Translations under genes and position numbers: made by a program
The notes under the pieces: generated by a model
The model's input: only the letters and a program-made list of their open reading frames with translations
Database searches by the model: none
Told to the model about the DNA's origin: nothing
NCBI GenBank assembly: GCA_013115145.1
Contig: JAAPAO010000002.1
Coordinates: forward strand, 1-63,976
Direction of reading: 5' to 3'
DNA from: Perkinsus chesapeaki ATCC PRA-425
Taxonomy: Eukaryota > Protista > Perkinsozoa
DNA length: 63,976 nt
In this document: positions 25,165-35,678 of the stretch, piece after piece
How positions within the stretch are numbered: position 1 is the stretch's first letter
How the letters are laid out: every line of letters starts with the position of its first letter

Positions 25165-27342
25165 ATGAGCTCCCCAATCCCACAGACGGCCCTTCCCTTC
25201 ACAAGAGTGGCGGCTATTGTTCAGAGCATTGGAGCTGAATCCATGGTGAATAATCTTATGGAGGTTGGCTGCCAGGTGTTCGTCGTATGCTACCCTTCTT
25301 CGGCGTCGTCACCACTTGGTCTTGAAGGGAATAATCTGTCGGTAATACGGTGTGATGACCGCAATGTCGCTGTGGCGGCAATCCGGGCCTTCGCGCCGGA
25401 GCTCGTCCTCATACTTCCCCATTTGTTCTGGTATCCCAGAGAGGAATTATCTGCATATCCTATATGGGAGCTGCGATATGCCGGCACATCTATTAGGCAA
25501 GACATGTGGCCTGAATACGATATGATAATAGACAGCCGTTGTGAAGTTTGTGTCGAGCTCACTTGCGATGAGAGGATTATAGGGTCTATGGGCGTATCTG
25601 TCAATGGAGAGACTGAAACAGCTCTGACGCTACGCCAAAAACTGCTTGAGGCTTGTCAGAGTCTTCTGTGTAACCAAGTAATACCGCTTCTGGGGGCGAC
25701 TGAAGACGATAGCCAGTCCATGGGATATCCTAGTGGGGTTGTAGGCCTTGAAGTTTCAGAAAGCTCGGACCGCGAGGTAGTTTCAGCGCATATCCGAGCC
25801 ATGAATTTTCCTCCTTATTCTGATGGGATTCCGTTACGGGTTACTGGGGTGGAGGGCCCCGACTTTCTGGTAGACTACCCCGAACAATTTGACCGAATCA
25901 TTAAGGCCGCAAAGGATGGGATCCGCTGCACCCAGCCGGACATTCGGAGCAGCTCCCGCACTACCCCGGGCTTCGCGGCTGACACACATTTCTACAGTAA
26001 CATTGGAGGGTCTATAGTGAAGGTGAGCGGCGTAGGCAATTGTGGGACTGGCTTGGATGACATCCCTCGAACTGAAGGCCACTGTGATGTGATTCCTGGT
26101 AGTGCTATTTCTGATCGCATTCCCAAGAAACTGAGAATGAACGAGCCTTTCATTGGGCCCAACGCTGGGCTCTACATATCTCGGGCATTGGGGTCTGGAT
26201 GGATTGGAGTAGAGGGCCCGTGGGTCAAAAAATTTGAGAGAAAGATTGCTAGTATATGTGGAGGACGCGCAGCATGTGCAGTACAGAGCGGGACGGCTGC
26301 ACTCTATGGAGCTATGAAAGCGTTGGGAGTGAGCAATCCGGAACACTTTGTAATATGTCCGGCATTCACCTGCGCGGCCTGCGCAGATGCAGTGGTTCAT
26401 GCCGGTGGTACCCCTTTGATATGTGATGTCGAGGAAGACAGCTATGCTTTGAGCTACCAGGCTGTACTGAACGCTCTGGACCATCCCGTTCATGGGCCCA
26501 AGATAGTAGGGATGATAGTGGCTCCGTGTTATGGTGTGCCGGCTCGGGATTATCTGAAACTCGTTAACCTTTCTCGAGATCGCTCCATATGGTTGTGCGA
26601 AGACAACTGTGAGAGTTATGGTGCAACCGTAGTAGATGAGACTGGCTCTCGCGTACGGTTGGGTAGTCTGGGTACCATATCAGTTGTATCTGTTCGCTCT
26701 GAGAAGATGGTAGGAGTGGGTGAGGGCGGAGCCATCATCTCTAATAATGTTAGCTTGGTCGCAGCCGCTAGATGGTGGTGCTCTCGTGCTCCTTGCGTTG
26801 GTCAAGGGTTGTGGCACGTGTATAATCACGAAAGTGTCGGGCAAAACTTCCGCATGCCTGAACTCCTTGGCTGTGTTGGCGTGGCGGCGGCAGAAATGTT
26901 GCCGACTATGCTCAGTAGGAAAAGGGCAATTCATGGCTGGTATGAGGAACATCTGGCCGACCTATCGAAGTCTGAGATGATCTCCTTGCAGCAGTACGAG
27001 CCGACCTGTCAGCCGGTTTGGTGGCTGAATGCGGTGTTCTTGAAGAACCAAAGTGTAAGGGGCGAAGAAATCGGGACGGAGCTCATGAGAATAGCGCCTG
27101 AAGTCGAGATTCGGCCGGGCTTCTATCCGCTCGGGCTGATGAAACCGTTCCGCGGAGAAGAAGCGCTAGCATGCCCCGTAGCAGAGCTACTATACGAGAG
27201 GATTTTGTGCTTGCCGAGCAGCCATAATCTCACCGAGAGTGACGTTAAACATGTATGTGACACCCTGCGTGTAGCGGTTCATAATGTGACCAGTCTAAGC
27301 AATAGCAAATTGGCACACGGACCACGGGCTATGGCTGCCTGA
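25165..27342 (+). CDS. Intronless fusion of a degenerate formyltransferase-like domain and a DegT/DnrJ/EryC1/StrS (perosamine-synthase-like) PLP aminotransferase
   Basis: Within ORF 24913..27342; likely start MSSPIP at 25165. Aminotransferase motifs VQSGTAALY, PAFTC, EDNCESYG, SEKMVGVGEGG (PLP Lys), GQNFRM and LCLPSS. The N-terminal ~260 aa follow the formyltransferase pattern (IRAFAPELVL, TETALTLRQKL, HIRAMNFPPY). Confidence 0.9.
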   Translation: MSSPIPQTALPFTRVAAIVQSIGAESMVNNLMEVGCQVFVVCYPSSASSPLGLEGNNLSVIRCDDRNVAVAAIRAFAPELVLILPHLFWYPREELSAYPIWELRYAGTSIRQDMWPEYDMIIDSRCEVCVELTCDERIIGSMGVSVNGETETALTLRQKLLEACQSLLCNQVIPLLGATEDDSQSMGYPSGVVGLEVSESSDREVVSAHIRAMNFPPYSDGIPLRVTGVEGPDFLVDYPEQFDRIIKAAKDGIRCTQPDIRSSSRTTPGFAADTHFYSNIGGSIVKVSGVGNCGTGLDDIPRTEGHCDVIPGSAISDRIPKKLRMNEPFIGPNAGLYISRALGSGWIGVEGPWVKKFERKIASICGGRAACAVQSGTAALYGAMKALGVSNPEHFVICPAFTCAACADAVVHAGGTPLICDVEEDSYALSYQAVLNALDHPVHGPKIVGMIVAPCYGVPARDYLKLVNLSRDRSIWLCEDNCESYGATVVDETGSRVRLGSLGTISVVSVRSEKMVGVGEGGAIISNNVSLVAAARWWCSRAPCVGQGLWHVYNHESVGQNFRMPELLGCVGVAAAEMLPTMLSRKRAIHGWYEEHLADLSKSEMISLQQYEPTCQPVWWLNAVFLKNQSVRGEEIGTELMRIAPEVEIRPGFYPLGLMKPFRGEEALACPVAELLYERILCLPSSHNLTESDVKHVCDTLRVAVHNVTSLSNSKLAHGPRAMAA

Positions 27343-27767
27343 GCATTTTACGGATGTGGTTCTGCTCGCTGCCCCAAGTTACGAGGCACTGTTGTTGGTT
27401 TTGCATGACACATGAATATAACTGTTAGGTTAACAGTACACTGTTGCGTTGGTAGTAAACAGTCGGCTGAGATGGGACCCTTCCCGAGGGTGTACAATGG
27501 CTAATCTTCCGAATGGAGATACCGTTAAATGAACTCAAAGCGGTCTGAACTGAGCATTCCACACCGGGAGGAAATAAGAAAACACACGAAACAAGGGATA
27601 AGTTTCATAATAACGTGAACATGAACACTTTTTACTGATAATAGAATGGCTATTCGACGATCGGAACTAACAGAATATGAGCAAAATCAACTCTGTGATG
27701 TCGGGGAGTCCCCGGCGGGGATAGACATGCAAGCAGCATACACAAGTAGTACTCGAAAGGGAGATGG

Positions 27768-28625: not shown

Positions 28626-31600
28626 ATGAGACAGCAGTTGATCAGTTCACCAGAGATTAGAAGGCACGGTGAAGATACTATCAAATTCATTGCTAGGTAA
28701 CACGTACACTGATTTCGTCCAAATCATTTTAATAACCATCTTCACTATCGTAGGCTTCTCGCTGGAGCCAATACTAATGGATATACGACAGAATCTACGG
28801 GATCGCTTAGAAATTTAGGTGAGGAACTTCCATCAAAGGCGCATCCCTCAATACTTCTCGTATTCAGGTATTGTTCCCCTAAAGGGACGAGAATGGGGGG
28901 AAATAATGTCGATGATTGAAGAAAACATTTTACCTAGAATACGGAAAGAACAGCTGAGAAAGCTGGAAACGCCATGGAATATCAGTTCAACAAGTGAACG
29001 TTTTCTCTTATTGCAGCTCAAACCTTGAGGCTACTTTGTGACAGGTACGCCAGCAATCTTATCCGACACCCTCGTTAATGCCCTAGCTGCTGTTGGGATC
29101 CAGTGGGGAGCTAGTCCGGTAGGCCAATGCTGAACTCACAACAGTTGGACTGAGTCAAGTACCCAATGGTACGCTTGCAGATTCTGACCGAGATGGAAGT
29201 AGTTGTGATGGACACTTTGGCGACTACTTTGGGTTTGGGAGAGGATTTTCGTCACTCTTCTGGGAAGGGCGGTGGAGTGGTAGTACTCCGGTAGATTCGG
29301 TATATTTCCGGTCAGATGGCGTCGCGGCGCGCAGACCCGCTTGTTTTGCCAGATACAGAACACGACCGCTGATGCTCTTCTTGCTGTCATAGCTGCAGCG
29401 AGAGTGAAGCGTCGGCTTCAATCATACCTGGGAGGCGACTGTTCATACCAGCGGTCTAAACAAGTGAGGCTATACCGGTGGATTGCCGTATGTACAGCAC
29501 GCATCCTCAATCCGTCCTGCACATCAGGTTCTCTCGGATGAGCGGGAAGCAGAGAAAATCTACTTCGATGACCTGGCTTCAATTACTATGTACGGAGCTT
29601 CGCTCTCTGAGAGCAATCCTGCTGGGATGTTTAGTAAGGTACGGCTCAGTCAGTGGCAATATTGCTCTAGACAAAGCGTGTTCAGCCGCAGGAGTGGATT
29701 TGCACAAAGTAGCGTTACTGTTACGACTTTTGGGTTATCCTCGCTGATATTGTAGGTGCCAACGGGTGCCGATCTCTCTATGAACACGAATGAACTTAAG
29801 CGCATGATTGCTGAAGATAAGTATTGCGAACCTACTCTCGTCTAGTCTGAAGTCTCGGTTATGTAGGCAACAGAGCCGCGTTCCTGCCCTTTGTGTAGCA
29901 ACTCTGAGTAATGAACATGGCAAAGCGAGCGATGATATCCAAGCTCTGGCAAATATGTGGGTTGCTACCGGTCTCACTGCGTCCAGCATTCCTTATCCCA
30001 GATGCAAAGCCGAGGGCATGTGGCTTCATATCGAGGGGTCCTTAGGTGGAAGTGCCTTGTTTCTTGAGGACAATGAGAAGGAGAGGATGAGTGTATCCAA
30101 GGTGAATAACGCAATGGCTGACAACTCGGCATCATCCACTCCGCAGTACGCAGACTCATTCAATATGAATGGCTCGTCGTGCTTCCCCATGGGGTTGGAT
30201 ATGGAGTTTCTATGGGTTAAGGTAAGCCTCACCATTTGGTACCATCGCCAGCTCAATTGAGAGAAATTTCTACAACCACCCATAGTAACCGGGCTTGATT
30301 GAGTCATCTGTGCCATGTAAGGACAGTACAAGCATGATAACTGCCTTCGCTGCAACTGGAGACTACATGCCACATATGGAAGAAACGAATGACGCTCCAT
30401 ATCTAAGCAAATGGTAAGCACCTCGGACCATATGCTCGAGAAAGTATTGCTCCTGCATCCTTAGGGGCATCCCTCTGGGCCGTCAGTTTCGTTCGCTGCG
30501 ATTATGGGCCATTTTACAGAATTATGGACTATACGACATAAAAAACTCCTTGAAGGACAGACTAAAGTGGGAATACCTCAGGGAGTAGCAGCTATGGTTT
30601 TCTGTAGTACCATTACGAGTAATGACACTGACCTTCAAAGAACACGCGTTACAGACCAGATTGACAGGATCGAGAACCTCGAAGAGGATGGGCTTCTGAC
30701 GGTGGATCTCATAGCGCGGTAGTAAAGCCCGACGTTATTTCGTTGAGTCATGATTCATGAGTCATGAACTCTCTTTGGTTTCTTTGGCGTGTTTGGAGCG
30801 TTACGACGAACTCGTTACTTTTACGGCTCAGATACTTCGACACGCTCAGCAATCGACCGGTTAGAGACAGTGCTATTAAGCCAGGAAGTTGCGCCGCCGC
30901 TTTGCGTCAAACAGGTATGTTGTTCTCCGGGGTTCATACTGTAAAATGGCGCTTGATGCTTCATCCTTCTGCCGGCGTGATAACGTTACCCGCCCACAAA
31001 AATTCGGAACTGGGTTCATCGACCCATCCTGCTCACTTGTAGCCTTTGCAGATATCCTTCCTGATCGGGGACGCCAGTGGAACGAGATACTGCAGGACAT
31101 AGAACGGTTTGTGGTCCCTGGGATATGTCACTGGCAGCATCCGAAGTTTCTGGCGTTCTTCCCATCCAAAACAAGTGATACATTCTCGGCAATACCCACC
31201 CATTCGCTTAATCCACTGGGTGTCAGAGATATGTCGTATACTGAAGATAGCTTTGTTTGTCGCAAGGTAACCCAGCAATTCTGTCAGAGGCTATCACAGC
31301 AGCTATTGGCGGCGTAAGCGCTGACCCTACTAATGACTCGGTGAGCTCGGTCGGCGCTAATGGTAACGTGTAGGATTTGGCTGTTGTAGGTAGAGGATAT
31401 GATAGAATCCATAGTTATGGATGGACTGGGTGAAGCCTTCCACTTGGGGAAAGACTTCTTACATCGATCGGGAAAGGGTGGTGGCATTGTATGTGCCCTA
31501 CTGGTGAAGCGCGGTCAAGAAGACGTTGCCCCCTTTATCAGATACAAAATACAGCCAGCGATGCCTTAGTGGCCGTCATAGCAGCTGCGCGTACTCGCAT

Positions 31601-33341
31601 GCAGGTAAGATTACGGTTGAATCGTGGTTCGCCGGGGCACGCTGAGCCAATCGGGGCTCAGCGCGGTGCCAATACGCTCTTATGCCAAATCCCACCTGTG
31701 TTGTCCCTGAGCCTCACTTACGCATTACTTGTTGACATCAGGTACTTAGAAGATCATACGATTCGGAGAACGGGCGAAATGTAGACATGTCCAAGTTTGT
31801 TGTGTAATAAAAAACAGCACTTTCCAAGTTTGTTCCTTAGTTATGCTAGGCTGAGGACTAGGTTTGAGATTCAATATCATATTTGGCGAGCTACACTGAT
31901 AATACTGTATAAGTATTTGCTTTGTGTTTTGCCAGATACATGTCTTCGCAAACACATTTCTCTTCTGAAAAGGCATGCCGAGCTGCTGGTGTTCGACTTC
32001 GAAAGGTGGGTCCCCGGTCGTAACTTCCGCTTCAATAGATTTCCAGATTCCGTGCATCTATGAGAAGAGCAACTTCATTATGGATGTGGACCTCATGGAG
32101 GAAGTCATATCTAGAGACAAGTGAGGCAGCAGGAGGCAAATCATCCATGCATTTCACTCACCGTCAGAGAGATCGGCTTGATACCAATCCTTTGTATTGC
32201 CAACTATGGAACGACGAACACGTGTGCAATAGATCCACTGAAGAAGCTAGGGCCCTTGTAAGTACAATGCCATTTGACCATTGGGAAAACTACTCCGCTG
32301 AAATGTGTAGGTGCAGAAAAGAAAATATGTTGTTACACGTGGACGCCGCTTACGGCGGGGCTGCCTTGATTCTCGATGCTTTCAGAGAAGATGCTGATAT
32401 GATTTGCAGCGTAAGTTTTGCCTGCATATTGCATTATGATTGTACATGCTAATAGTCCCTCGAAATATGATCATCGCATTCATGGTTACTCACAGCGAGT
32501 TTTCAATCTCCTTCAGAATGCAGATTCCGTCAATATCAATGGGTCCAAGTGGTTCGGTGCTGGCTTCAATTCCGCATTCCTATGGGTGAAGGTGAGCTCA
32601 CGGAGCATGAGGGGCATGAGCATCGACTCCAACCAGTGATACTTCCCTGTATTCTTTCAGGACCGGCGCAATTTAGTTAGAACATTTGGAGCTCCTAATC
32701 TGACAGTGAATTCGAAACCGACCGGAACTGACAATGAACGGCCGAACTTGTCATCCTGGTAAGCCTCGTTTTCGACGGATCAATCGATATTGATACACGG
32801 CTTTCCTTAAGAATCACCCACAATCGCGCAGCCAGTGCACTAGTGACCTGTTAGGTCATTACCGGTATACAGTAAGTTCAGAGCGCTACGTATTTGGGCT
32901 ACGATACAATACTTCGGTATTGAGCAGCTGAGGGCGAACGTAGCACACGATATAAACTGCGCAGTACGTTTCCGAGAACAGCTAGCTGACGAAGCTCTCC
33001 AGGTTGTTAAGCAATCAGTCATCCATGTGATCATACTACTTGTGCCTATCTCAGGGATGTTTGAGCTTCCCGGTGACCAACCCCTTTGGTCTTGTCTGCT
33101 TCACGGCTTTGCCCAATACCTTGAACGATGACATTTTACGGTATACCGAGAATTGCGGATTTATGATGTAGGCTAAATGTAGAAGTGCAAATATGGCAAA
33201 GAGTCCCGTGCCACCAGGTTTCCTTCCAAGCTTCCTGATGGTTCGCCTATAATCAGAGTAGCTTTCGGTAGTCCGTTGACGACGTTCAGCCATGTCGATG
33301 AGTTATGCGCATGTATCAAAGATGCCATCCGTAGCAGCTAG
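28626..33341 (+). CDS. Tandem-fused group II PLP-dependent decarboxylase (aromatic-L-amino-acid decarboxylase family): degenerate unit A (28626-30566) joined in frame to complete unit B (~30670-33341)
   Basis: Unit A: IRRHGEDTIKFIAR, IQWGASP, GKGGGV|IQNTT, HIEGSLGG, NGSSCF, WGIPLGRQFRSLRLW. Unit B: GLLTVDLIAR|YFD, HWQHPKFLAFFP, GKGGGI, QTHFSSEKA, HVDAAYGG, NGSKWF, KFRALRIW, FGLVCF, IIRVAFGS. Every unit A exon and the A-B junction splice in frame via GT-AG; stop at 33339-33341. Confidence 0.9.
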
Positions 33342-33733: not shown

Positions 33734-35678
33734 CTATATACTGTAGTGCTTAGTGCATTCGATCTCCACCTGACGATAAAGAATCTTCGCAAGACGTGTC
33801 GCTTCCGTAGGGTTTGGAGCCACGAAGATGATGTCGACCAACCAGCTGGGTTGACCCTCCTCTGGTCCAACAATTTTTTCACCGGCAGCAACCATGGGGC
33901 GGGCGACCTTAACATCCGCAAGAGGCCAATCGAGCCATTGACTCAGAAACCCGAAGTCATCGATACGCCCACTTTTTGGTGCATTAACAGATAGCCAGGC
34001 CACAGCTCCGTTCGGGTTCTCCGAATCATGAATCGGGATAGCCGGGATCCCAACAGATAGTAGCATAGCTTGAATGGCTAGGTCAACTTTAAATGCCAAC
34101 TTGTGCACGATCCACACTGGGCCGCCACCCATTCTAGCATTGATCTCTATAAGGCGAGGCCCCCGACTTGTATACTTGCCTTCAACATGGAATACACCCT
34201 CTTCAAAACCCGTAGCTTTCAAAGAGTCCAGCGCCATTTCTTTAAGCTCCGCTACGTGCTCCTTCGGAAGCGCGCTTGGCAAGATACCCCAGGTTTCCGC
34301 AAAGTAAGGTTCCATAGTGGGACCATTGTCATGTATTCCGCAGTAGGTGCAGCCGAGTCCAGGGGATAGGACAATATCAATATCGACCTCCTGGCCATCC
34401 AAGTACTCCTCGAACACGACTGATGTATTAATACACTTATCCGCCTTTACTGAACTCGCCTTGGAGCCAACGGCCACAGTATCGCGCTCTAGGGCTCCAG
34501 AGTTGACAACGAGCTTAGAGAGCACCCTTTGGACTTGTTCGTAAACCTTGGAAACATCGTCAAGGCTAGTGACCTGAAATGCAACGACGTATTCTTCTCA
34601 ATTCGCCAGGTCCGTAACACAGGTAGAATAAATTTATTCTCACCTTCTCAACACCTAGTGAAGCAGCGCCCGACACTGGTTTCATAACGGCAGGGAGTCC
34701 AACATGTTGAACAGCTCTCTCGAGATCCTCGCTTGACCGAACGAGGTAATGCTGAGAAAAGCCGCTGTAGTACGAACGTACACAATACGAGTAATTCTGC
34801 AGAGTCGCAACGGTTCTTACCTTAACTCCGGGGAGTCCAGCTTTTTGTAGGGCTTCCCGAGTCCTATGTTTGTCACGGACTGTGTCAACAGCGGAAGGGG
34901 TCGGTCCACGCATTCCGAGAGACTCGGCCAATCTCGCCACCACAGGAACAGATAATTCTACCATTGTACAAATCCCATCCGCGCCGCATACTAAAGGATC
35001 TTCCTTCAGGTCAATAACAGCTTTGAATGCTGCTTGAAAAATAGTTTCAGAATCTTGTGACATGTCAATAGGGATGAATTTGGCAATTATACCCTCGGTG
35101 AGTAGAGACTCAGCCCAAGAACCGGGTGAGTCAATAATTACAGATTTGACACCAAGCCGTTCGGCAGTCTCATAAACAAAGCGCTTACCGGGGTATCCAG
35201 CTGAAAAGAAAACTATACAGGCTCCTTTGAGAAGTTGCATTCTCAAACTATCCCCCGCCGGCCCACGGGTGAACAGAATCTCCGGTGGGATCATTTTGAG
35301 CATTTTGAAGGTAGCCGTTGGTAGCATCTGACGCGCGATTGAGTGCCGCTTCTCTTCTGTCATTGGGGTTGGCAAGGACCCCGGAGCATCCAGCATTTGC
35401 TCAGCGTAGAAAACACTTTCCATACCAGGATGCGAGGTACCAACGGAGAACTTATCGGTATCAATACAATCGTTACCGGCCGTACAAGTCTCAAGACCTG
35501 ATAGCTCGAAGACATAATCGTCGAGCGTTAATTCTTCAACGTAGCCAGTTTGCTCTGCCGACGAAGGCCTTGAAGTACGTGGTGATGACCAGGTGCCCGG
35601 ATTGGGCCGATTCAGCGCAACTTTGAGAGCATCCTCCATTGAACAAAAAGGAAATGCTACTACAACCAGATGCTTCAT
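33734..35678 (-). CDS. ATP-grasp amino-acid ligase, carnosine-synthase (CARNS1)-like, 3 exons
   Basis: IVFFSAGYPGKRFVYE, VRDKHRTREAL, AVMKPVSGAASLGVEK, FEEYLDGQEVDIDIV, GVFHVEGKY and LIEINARMGGG are ATP-grasp motifs of the CARNS1/L-amino-acid-ligase type. Confidence 0.9.

Follow-up and report, generated by a model that had tools for sequence, protein, structure and literature searches.

Closest Described Systems

Dopamine, serotonin, histamine, and many precursors of plant alkaloids are products of group II decarboxylases. The homodimeric, pyridoxal phosphate (PLP)-dependent enzymes of this group (PF00282: DDC/AADC, HDC, and plant TyDC/TDC) consist of two identical chains with two interface sites, and the dependence of these sites on the partner loop has been studied mainly through disease mutations. 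The gene analyzed here lies on the forward strand of a 63,976-nucleotide (nt) stretch of Perkinsus chesapeaki ATCC PRA-425 DNA (contig JAAPAO010000002.1; hereafter the window). It resembles the homodimeric enzymes in its fold, its motifs, and a predicted interface site with a loop Tyr acting in trans, but it holds two unlike units (A and B) in one chain and has one predicted site. Also unlike these enzymes, unit A has no C-terminal domain. We consider it probable that the gene encodes a fused pseudo-heterodimer, in which the Tyr loop of unit A lies over the PLP of unit B and completes a single composite site. We lean slightly towards the fuller reading of an obligate single-chain heterodimer of the DDC/HDC family with a cleanly split interface and half-of-sites activity, which would be the first among group II decarboxylases.

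The principle appears to have precedents, of which serine palmitoyltransferase (SPT, LCB1/LCB2) and its viral single-chain form seem the closest. According to the literature, SPT is likewise a PLP enzyme of fold type I, and one of its paralogous subunits is required although it has lost the PLP Lys. The paralogous subunits of the coccolithovirus SPT are naturally fused in one gene (Han et al. 2006, as cited in PMC5371807). Unlike the Perkinsus gene, SPT belongs to the alpha-oxoamine synthase family and has other chemistry. For SPT, we know of no report that a trans-acting catalytic loop was lost reciprocally. Trypanosomatid prozymes (AdoMetDC/prozyme and DHS/DHSp; PMC5201418, PMC3663545) are similar in that a dead paralogue is needed to activate the live one, but they are separate, non-PLP polypeptides; their activation is allosteric or proceeds by completion of a shared site, with no reciprocal partition of the interface. 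Aromatic aldehyde synthases carry substitutions at the same two catalytic positions (Tyr to Phe in plant PAAS/4HPAAS and His192 to Asn in insect DHPAA synthase). Their substitutions alter the chemistry of a live site, whereas those of Perkinsus are found on the dead side of each unit.

An earlier note on this DNA did not know the architecture to have been described for the family. In searches of the literature, we found neither a fused, pseudo-dimeric, or pseudo-heterodimeric group II decarboxylase nor any account of this Perkinsus gene. The fused gene model itself was already public in GenBank, though unnamed, and the A–B fusion is not new in that sense, as the annotation is already a single fused protein.

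Catalytic Residues of Units A and B

The coding region and its two units were located as follows.

28626–33341, forward strand: whole fused coding region; curated model from spliced alignment with 29 exons and 917 amino acids (aa)
28626–30566, forward strand: unit A, exons 1–13; diverged group II decarboxylase copy with a degenerate PLP site and without the C-terminal small domain
30608–33341, forward strand: unit B, exons 14–29; full-length group II decarboxylase whose PLP site is intact

Both units were aligned to solved structures with HMMER, and residue numbers below are those of DDC. Unit A aligned to DDC, HDC, and DHPAA synthase with E-values of about 1e-38 to 1e-42. Its best solved match was insect DHPAA synthase, which likewise has Asn at position 192. 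About 100 residues, corresponding to the C-terminal small domain, were missing from unit A. In the following list, the three PLP-site positions and the loop Tyr were placed by the HMMER alignment, and loops 2 and 3 by the column survey described below.

29658–29660, forward strand: AAT, Asn at the His192 position (SGNIALD); Gln in both P. olseni lineages
30033–30035, forward strand: GAG, Glu at the Asp271 position (LHIEGSL)
30177–30179, forward strand: TCG, Ser at the PLP-Lys position, Lys303 (MNGSSCF); Cys and Ser in the P. olseni lineages
29045–29279, forward strand: unit A exons 4–5, loop 2 and its flank (AAVGIQWGASP / ILTEME)
30322–30413, forward strand: unit A exon 12, catalytic (large) loop AFAATGDYMPH, with Tyr (TAC, 30364–30366) at the Tyr332 position
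30465–30566, forward strand: unit A exon 13 (its last), end of loop 3, GIPLGRQFRSLRLW; Leu353, Gly354, and Arg355 retained

The Schiff-base Lys, the pyridine-binding Asp, and the stacking His were replaced in unit A by Ser, Glu, and Asn, respectively, and the His302–Lys303 pair of DDC reads Ser-Ser. Glu at the Asp271 position is a loss specific to P. chesapeaki, as unit A of P. olseni retains Asp. The loop 2 region of unit A retained the invariant residues Gly102, Trp105, Pro109, Thr112, and Glu113. Its catalytic loop was similar to that of a single-unit relative, protein P0124 (ITGDYMHQ).

Unit B matched Arabidopsis PAAS (deposited as ‘Tyrosine decarboxylase 1’) with an E-value of 1.6e-73. 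Its catalytic positions, again from the HMMER alignment, and its degenerate loops were as follows.

31955–31957, forward strand: CAT, His at the His192 position
32342–32344, forward strand: GAC, Asp at the Asp271 position
32547–32549, forward strand: AAG, PLP Schiff-base Lys (NGSKW)
32661–32758, forward strand: unit B exon 26, degenerate catalytic loop, with Thr (32703–32705) at the Tyr332 position
31267–31340, forward strand: unit B exon 17, degenerate loop 2, AAIGGVSADPTNDS; invariant Gly102, Trp105, and Pro109 lost
31390–31395, forward strand: start of unit B exon 18; neighboring invariants Thr112 and Glu113 lost
32855–32897, forward strand: start of unit B exon 27, degenerate end of loop 3, SLPVYSKFRALRIW; Leu353 to Val, Gly354 to Tyr, and Arg355 to Ser

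Lys 32547, Asp 32342, and His 31955 give unit B all three residues of the PLP site. In this family the Schiff-base Lys sits in an S-x-N-x-N-x-(H/S)-K-W motif. The loop of unit B, RTFGAPNLTVNS, begins at 32679, and its Thr aligned with the loop Tyr of Drosophila DDC and the loop Phe of Arabidopsis PAAS. In 56 single-unit relatives this column held Tyr (43 sequences) or Phe (13 sequences) and nothing else. Only unit A, with Tyr 30364, carries either of these residues, and unit B has Thr. The earlier note had named seven codons of this mirror-image pattern. A codon check in the window found all of them at the given positions with the given residues, and their DDC equivalences were confirmed for both units by the alignment to solved structures.

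Conserved-Column Survey

We selected 78 columns, without reference to the hypothesis, in which the residue was conserved in at least 85% of the 56 single-unit relatives, and recorded the residues lost in all B sequences yet kept in all A sequences, and the reverse. Eight residues were lost in B only: Gly102, Trp105, Pro109, Thr112, Glu113, Leu353, Gly354, and Trp267. Seven of the eight belonged to loop 3 or to loop 2 and its flank, regions that together hold 16 of the 78 columns (Fisher p = 3e-5). The losses confined to A included five residues of loop 1 (Trp71, Pro74, Phe76, Ala78, and Pro81; p = 0.0016), and Thr246, Ala273, and Lys303, which serve the subunit’s own site. Gly36, Gly233, Leu234, and Leu324 were also lost in A only, and Leu324 lies inside loop 3.

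The same division is known from crystal structures. In human AADC/DDC, loops 2 and 3 belong to the active site of the adjacent subunit (PMC8003434), and Tyr332', Arg347', and Leu353' contribute in trans (PMC10382914). In plant structures, the Tyr on the large loop of one chain acts jointly with the His on the small loop of its partner chain (bioRxiv 10.1101/404970). Because the B-only and A-only losses match the published AADC loop assignments, we read the partition of losses as exactly that between cis-acting and trans-acting residues. The dead unit retains what it would give to the site of the live one, namely the Tyr and the invariant residues of loops 2 and 3. Judging from the residues, a complete site would be present in neither an A:A nor a B:B pair, so the gene would not fit a symmetric homodimer with two sites.

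Conservation of the loops followed this division. The mobile loop of unit A showed 57–71% identity between lineages, compared with 44–48% for the whole of A, and the loop of unit B showed about 36%, compared with about 60% for the whole of B. Because it recurs in three diverged lineages, and because the B losses cluster in two trans-acting loops, we take the reciprocal pattern to be far beyond chance.

Comparison among Perkinsus Lineages

The three lineages compared were the window copy of P. chesapeaki and two types of P. olseni. Type I has the same gene neighborhood as the window, with a DegT-type aminotransferase upstream and an ATP-grasp ligase downstream. Type II is represented by contig L005 and the partial protein P0186. 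The window copy showed 42–48% identity in A and 57–62% in B to each P. olseni copy, and the divergence between the two P. olseni types is of similar size. Synonymous sites were saturated between lineages, so the ratio of nonsynonymous to synonymous substitution rates (dN/dS) is unusable there.

In all three lineages the PLP Lys of unit A was replaced (Ser/Cys/Ser) and its loop Tyr was kept, and in all three the Lys of unit B was kept and its loop Tyr was replaced (Thr/Glu/Pro). Unit B of P. olseni type I has Asn at the His192 position (SSQTNVSS; L001 14377–14451, L003 13135–13192), the substitution that defines insect DHPAA synthase.

Unit A showed 48% identity over 412 codons without a stop between lineages whose synonymous sites are saturated. 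This identity, together with the retained open reading frame (ORF), argues that unit A is under purifying selection. A decaying pseudogene, which unit A did not resemble in the earlier note either, was rejected for unit A on account of its 415 open codons, its conserved splice sites, and the 48% identity across saturated divergence.

Units A and B are 35% identical to each other and have 12 intron positions in common, with identical phases. A maximum-likelihood tree that included 25 single-unit relatives placed the three A units in one clade and the four B sequences in another (each 100/100), with the two clades as sisters (UFboot/SH-aLRT 96/86). Because of the shared intron positions and phases and the sister relation of the A and B clades, we conclude from the sequences that an intron-bearing gene was duplicated in the Perkinsus lineage before the three sampled lineages diverged. 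The nearest single-unit relatives came from dinoflagellates and uncultured protists, with about 37–41% identity to B. A search of a representative library with a unit A exon gave five matches, two of which were the P. olseni relatives that opened this comparison.

Structure Prediction and the Role of Unit A

AlphaFold2 modeling of the annotated P. chesapeaki protein (P0009) from a 65-sequence alignment gave a mean predicted local distance difference test (pLDDT) value of 76.6 and a predicted template-modeling (pTM) score of only 0.66. The pLDDT of unit B was above 90, and that of unit A was mostly 65–88. By Foldseek, the unit B model matched HDC and AADC with template-modeling scores of 0.88–0.90 normalized by target, which re-identifies the fold only.

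The moderate confidence for unit A speaks for an alternative in which A supplies no catalytic residue, being an appendage with a structural or regulatory role or a relic in slow decay, and B works alone. B could then pair as B:B across chains and act without a loop Tyr, either in the manner of an aldehyde synthase or by slow non-specific protonation. Many invariants and the C-terminal domain are indeed gone from A, and enzymes of this family that lack the loop Tyr do work, as aldehyde synthases (bioRxiv 10.1101/404970). However, a B:B dimer would need in trans the very loop 2 and loop 3 invariants that B has lost. These are precisely the residues that survive in A. In three lineages the mobile loop of A shows higher conservation than the remainder of the unit, and all 56 single-unit relatives have Tyr or Phe at the loop position. 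We therefore consider this alternative unlikely. An aldehyde-synthase explanation of the missing Tyr in unit B was likewise judged less likely, as other trans elements were also lost in B and kept in A.

Gene Model

The region is an intron-rich eukaryotic gene, and a protein search matched Perkinsus proteins. The exon chain was obtained with a custom spliced protein-to-DNA aligner, with P. olseni proteins as guides. With their help the model was traced back to the ATG at 28626 and exon 27 was amended; the N-terminal exons of unit A were located through the P. olseni protein P0007. The curated model has 28 introns of 41–137 nt, all GT-AG, and its 29 exons join in frame with zero stops. The earlier claim that the unit A exons splice in frame without stops thus holds for the 13 exons of A and extends to all 29. 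The Pfam profile PF00282 (Pyridoxal_deC) matched in two stretches and scored 387.9 bits, where the cut-off is 27.

The P. chesapeaki protein FOL47_003234 (P0009, 846 aa) was 100% identical over 27 exons (28906–33338). It is labeled “hypothetical protein” in GenBank and named “Glutamate decarboxylase 2” in UniRef. FOL47_003234 begins at an internal Met (28906), so that exons 1–2 and the first part of exon 3 were missed (28626–28993), and its exon 27 stops 39 nt early at another donor (32964–33002). One further segment is probably an intron that GenBank reads as protein.

30102–30146, forward strand: probable 30th intron; 45 nt, in frame, GT..AG; translated in GenBank as VNNAMADNSASSTPQ

Its position and phase equal those of the unit B intron at 32411–32516. 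In the HMMER alignment no solved homologue has a counterpart of the residues that this segment encodes, and their pLDDT in the AlphaFold model was about 30. The curated length becomes 902 aa if the segment is spliced out.

The same P. chesapeaki sequence was recovered in independent DNA runs, including the data set of an independent isolate, and an assembly artefact was ruled out by this concordance. One DNA run (X4) showed single-base deletions (window 28884, 28895) in a G6 run of unit A exon 3, on short low-depth contigs. They were absent from deeper runs of the same sample and are probably read errors. In the 2022 DNA runs, a second allele (window 32597–32933) with about one-third of the depth had 644 unaligned letters in place of 32597–32804, which includes the unit B loop exon 26. 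In exon 27, the two alleles of these runs differed at seven positions, five of them synonymous; the other two share one codon and give a conservative Val to Leu change at the Leu353 position.

Junction between the Units

Two features make up the junction.

30567–30607, forward strand: junction intron, 41 nt, GTGGGA..TGTAG; its removal joins A to B in frame
30608–30718, forward strand: exon 14, linker of about 25 aa and N-terminal helix of unit B, EEDGLLTVDLIAR; aligns to the N-termini of PAAS and DDC

If the junction intron is retained, A ends at a TAG (30586–30588), and an in-frame ATG (30594) inside the intron precedes exon 14. This ATG tells against a fusion. Exon 14 itself holds no in-frame ATG, and the intron that follows it (after IAR) has the position and phase of the first intron of unit A. 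P. olseni L005 showed the same loss of the C-terminal domain from A, with a 46-nt junction intron and no in-frame ATG. The other P. olseni loci (type I) kept a remnant of the A C-terminal domain and had no ATG before the B helix. The frame across the A–B junction was preserved in all lineages. Because the B start codon is missing in P. olseni L005 and type I, and because a homologous intron follows exon 14, the junction features favor a true single-chain fusion.

The locus could instead produce two separate proteins, A up to the TAG at 30586 and B from the ATG at 30594 or after spliced-leader trans-splicing. The two would then form a non-covalent heterodimer, and the fusion would be an annotation artefact. 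Perkinsus mRNAs are trans-spliced. The ATG sits 5 nt past the stop of unspliced A, and tandem paralogues are often merged by gene predictors. On the other side, no in-frame ATG lies upstream of the B helix in the P. olseni L005 and type I copies, the gap between the units is just 41–46 nt and leaves no space for a 3' end and a promoter, and the junction frame is kept across the lineages. An intron of 41 nt also occurs within unit B (32006–32046). We regard two separate proteins as quite unlikely.

Damaged Copies and Expression

Several results weigh against a functional composite enzyme. The syntenic P. olseni loci (type I) were damaged by independent lesions, mostly in unit B. In L001 and L002 (14600–14900), a deletion fuses B exon 23 to exon 27 and removes the B exons for Asp, Lys, and the loop; a stop (K*GLVP) is also present. 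In L003 and L004, a 14-nt frameshifting insertion, TAGTATGCAGTGCA, lies right after HVDAA (L003 13530–13600), and two stops were observed, in A exon 9 and in B exon 27. The dN/dS among P. olseni type I haplotypes was 0.4–0.7 for both units, a value inflated by uncertain gene models. A P. marinus homologue was searched for and none was found. No RNA over the locus was detected in sequencing-run searches or in the species’ only two RNA data sets, both of which are small; splicing of the 41-nt junction intron is a prediction from the DNA.

Because the syntenic P. olseni loci are damaged, the gene is dispensable in at least some genomes and is not universally required. The earlier note had named disruption in orthologues as a result that would speak against its reading. 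Such disruption was found in the syntenic copies, but another P. olseni copy (L005/P0186) was intact as far as assembled. The undamaged P. olseni sequences were L005, L006, P0182, and P0186, and haplotype P0182 was intact where L001–L004 are damaged.

The lesions, the dN/dS values, the undetected expression, and the missing P. marinus homologue raise the possibility that the whole locus is silent or dying in P. chesapeaki too, and that the residue pattern is the fossil of a once functional enzyme. Against this stand the 917 open codons and the canonical splice sites of the 28 introns in P. chesapeaki. The sequence was identical in an independent isolate, five of the seven exon 27 allele differences were synonymous and the rest conservative, and P. 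olseni has undamaged copies (L005 with P0186, and P0182). We consider a dying locus very unlikely. The functional case in P. chesapeaki rests on the intact ORF and the allele pattern.

Predicted Composite Site

The fused pseudo-heterodimer would have arisen by tandem duplication of an intron-bearing gene similar to aromatic-amino-acid decarboxylases, followed by fusion of the copies into one polypeptide of about 900 aa. A and B would pack like a group II decarboxylase dimer, either within the chain or swapped between two chains, with a single catalytic site per A–B pair. Unit B would give the cis part of this site, consisting of loop 1, the PLP-stacking His, Thr246, Asp271, and the PLP-carrying Lys. 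Unit A would give the trans part, consisting of loops 2 and 3 and of the mobile catalytic loop with the Tyr that would protonate the quinonoid intermediate. The mirror site, with the pocket of A under the loops of B, would be dead, and the C-terminal small domain of A could be lost because of this.

Aldehyde synthases have Tyr to Phe or His to Asn at the PLP-bearing site, and the composite site would have neither, as it would combine the Tyr of A with the His of B. With both residues present, the enzyme would be a true decarboxylase that releases an amine and not an aldehyde synthase. Gly occupies position 354, which A would supply in trans; DDC and plant tryptophan decarboxylase share this Gly, and it hints at bulky aromatic substrates. 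The splicing of the junction intron, the A–B pairing, the reach of the A Tyr to the B PLP, and the activity of the protein are all inferred from sequence. The composite site that the earlier note had proposed, with the Tyr loop of A over the PLP of B, gained computational support from conservation in three lineages, the blind column survey, the loop conservation, and the missing start codon of B in two lineages.

The gene can be seen as a natural dissection, in which the cis and trans parts of the interface site are sorted into two units of one chain in agreement with crystal-structure assignments. If the composite site is real, it would offer an independent evolutionary read-out of trans-acting residues and a textbook case of subfunctionalization in a PLP enzyme, from homodimer to heterodimer to fusion. 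It would also provide a scaffold for engineered single-site decarboxylases and represent a lineage-specific enzyme of the parasite group that infects oysters and clams.

Gene Neighborhood

The fused decarboxylase is flanked by two genes.

25165–27342, forward strand: DegT/DnrJ/EryC1-type aminotransferase fusion, upstream of the fused decarboxylase
33734–35642, reverse strand: ATP-grasp ligase, downstream of the fused decarboxylase

The order of aminotransferase, fused decarboxylase, and ATP-grasp ligase is common to P. chesapeaki and P. olseni (L001 7153–18001; L003 6008–19665). The neighborhood may be a functional cluster for amine formation and ligation, or it may reflect mere synteny. The best solved match of the ATP-grasp ligase was the L-amino-acid ligase 3vot (E = 1e-5). 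Between the species, identity was 73–82% for the ATP-grasp ligase and for the C-terminal portion of the aminotransferase, compared with 42–62% for the decarboxylase. The two halves of the upstream aminotransferase (25204–27348, compared with L001 7210–9351) differed in conservation, with about 44% identity in the N-terminal half and about 79% in the DegT half.

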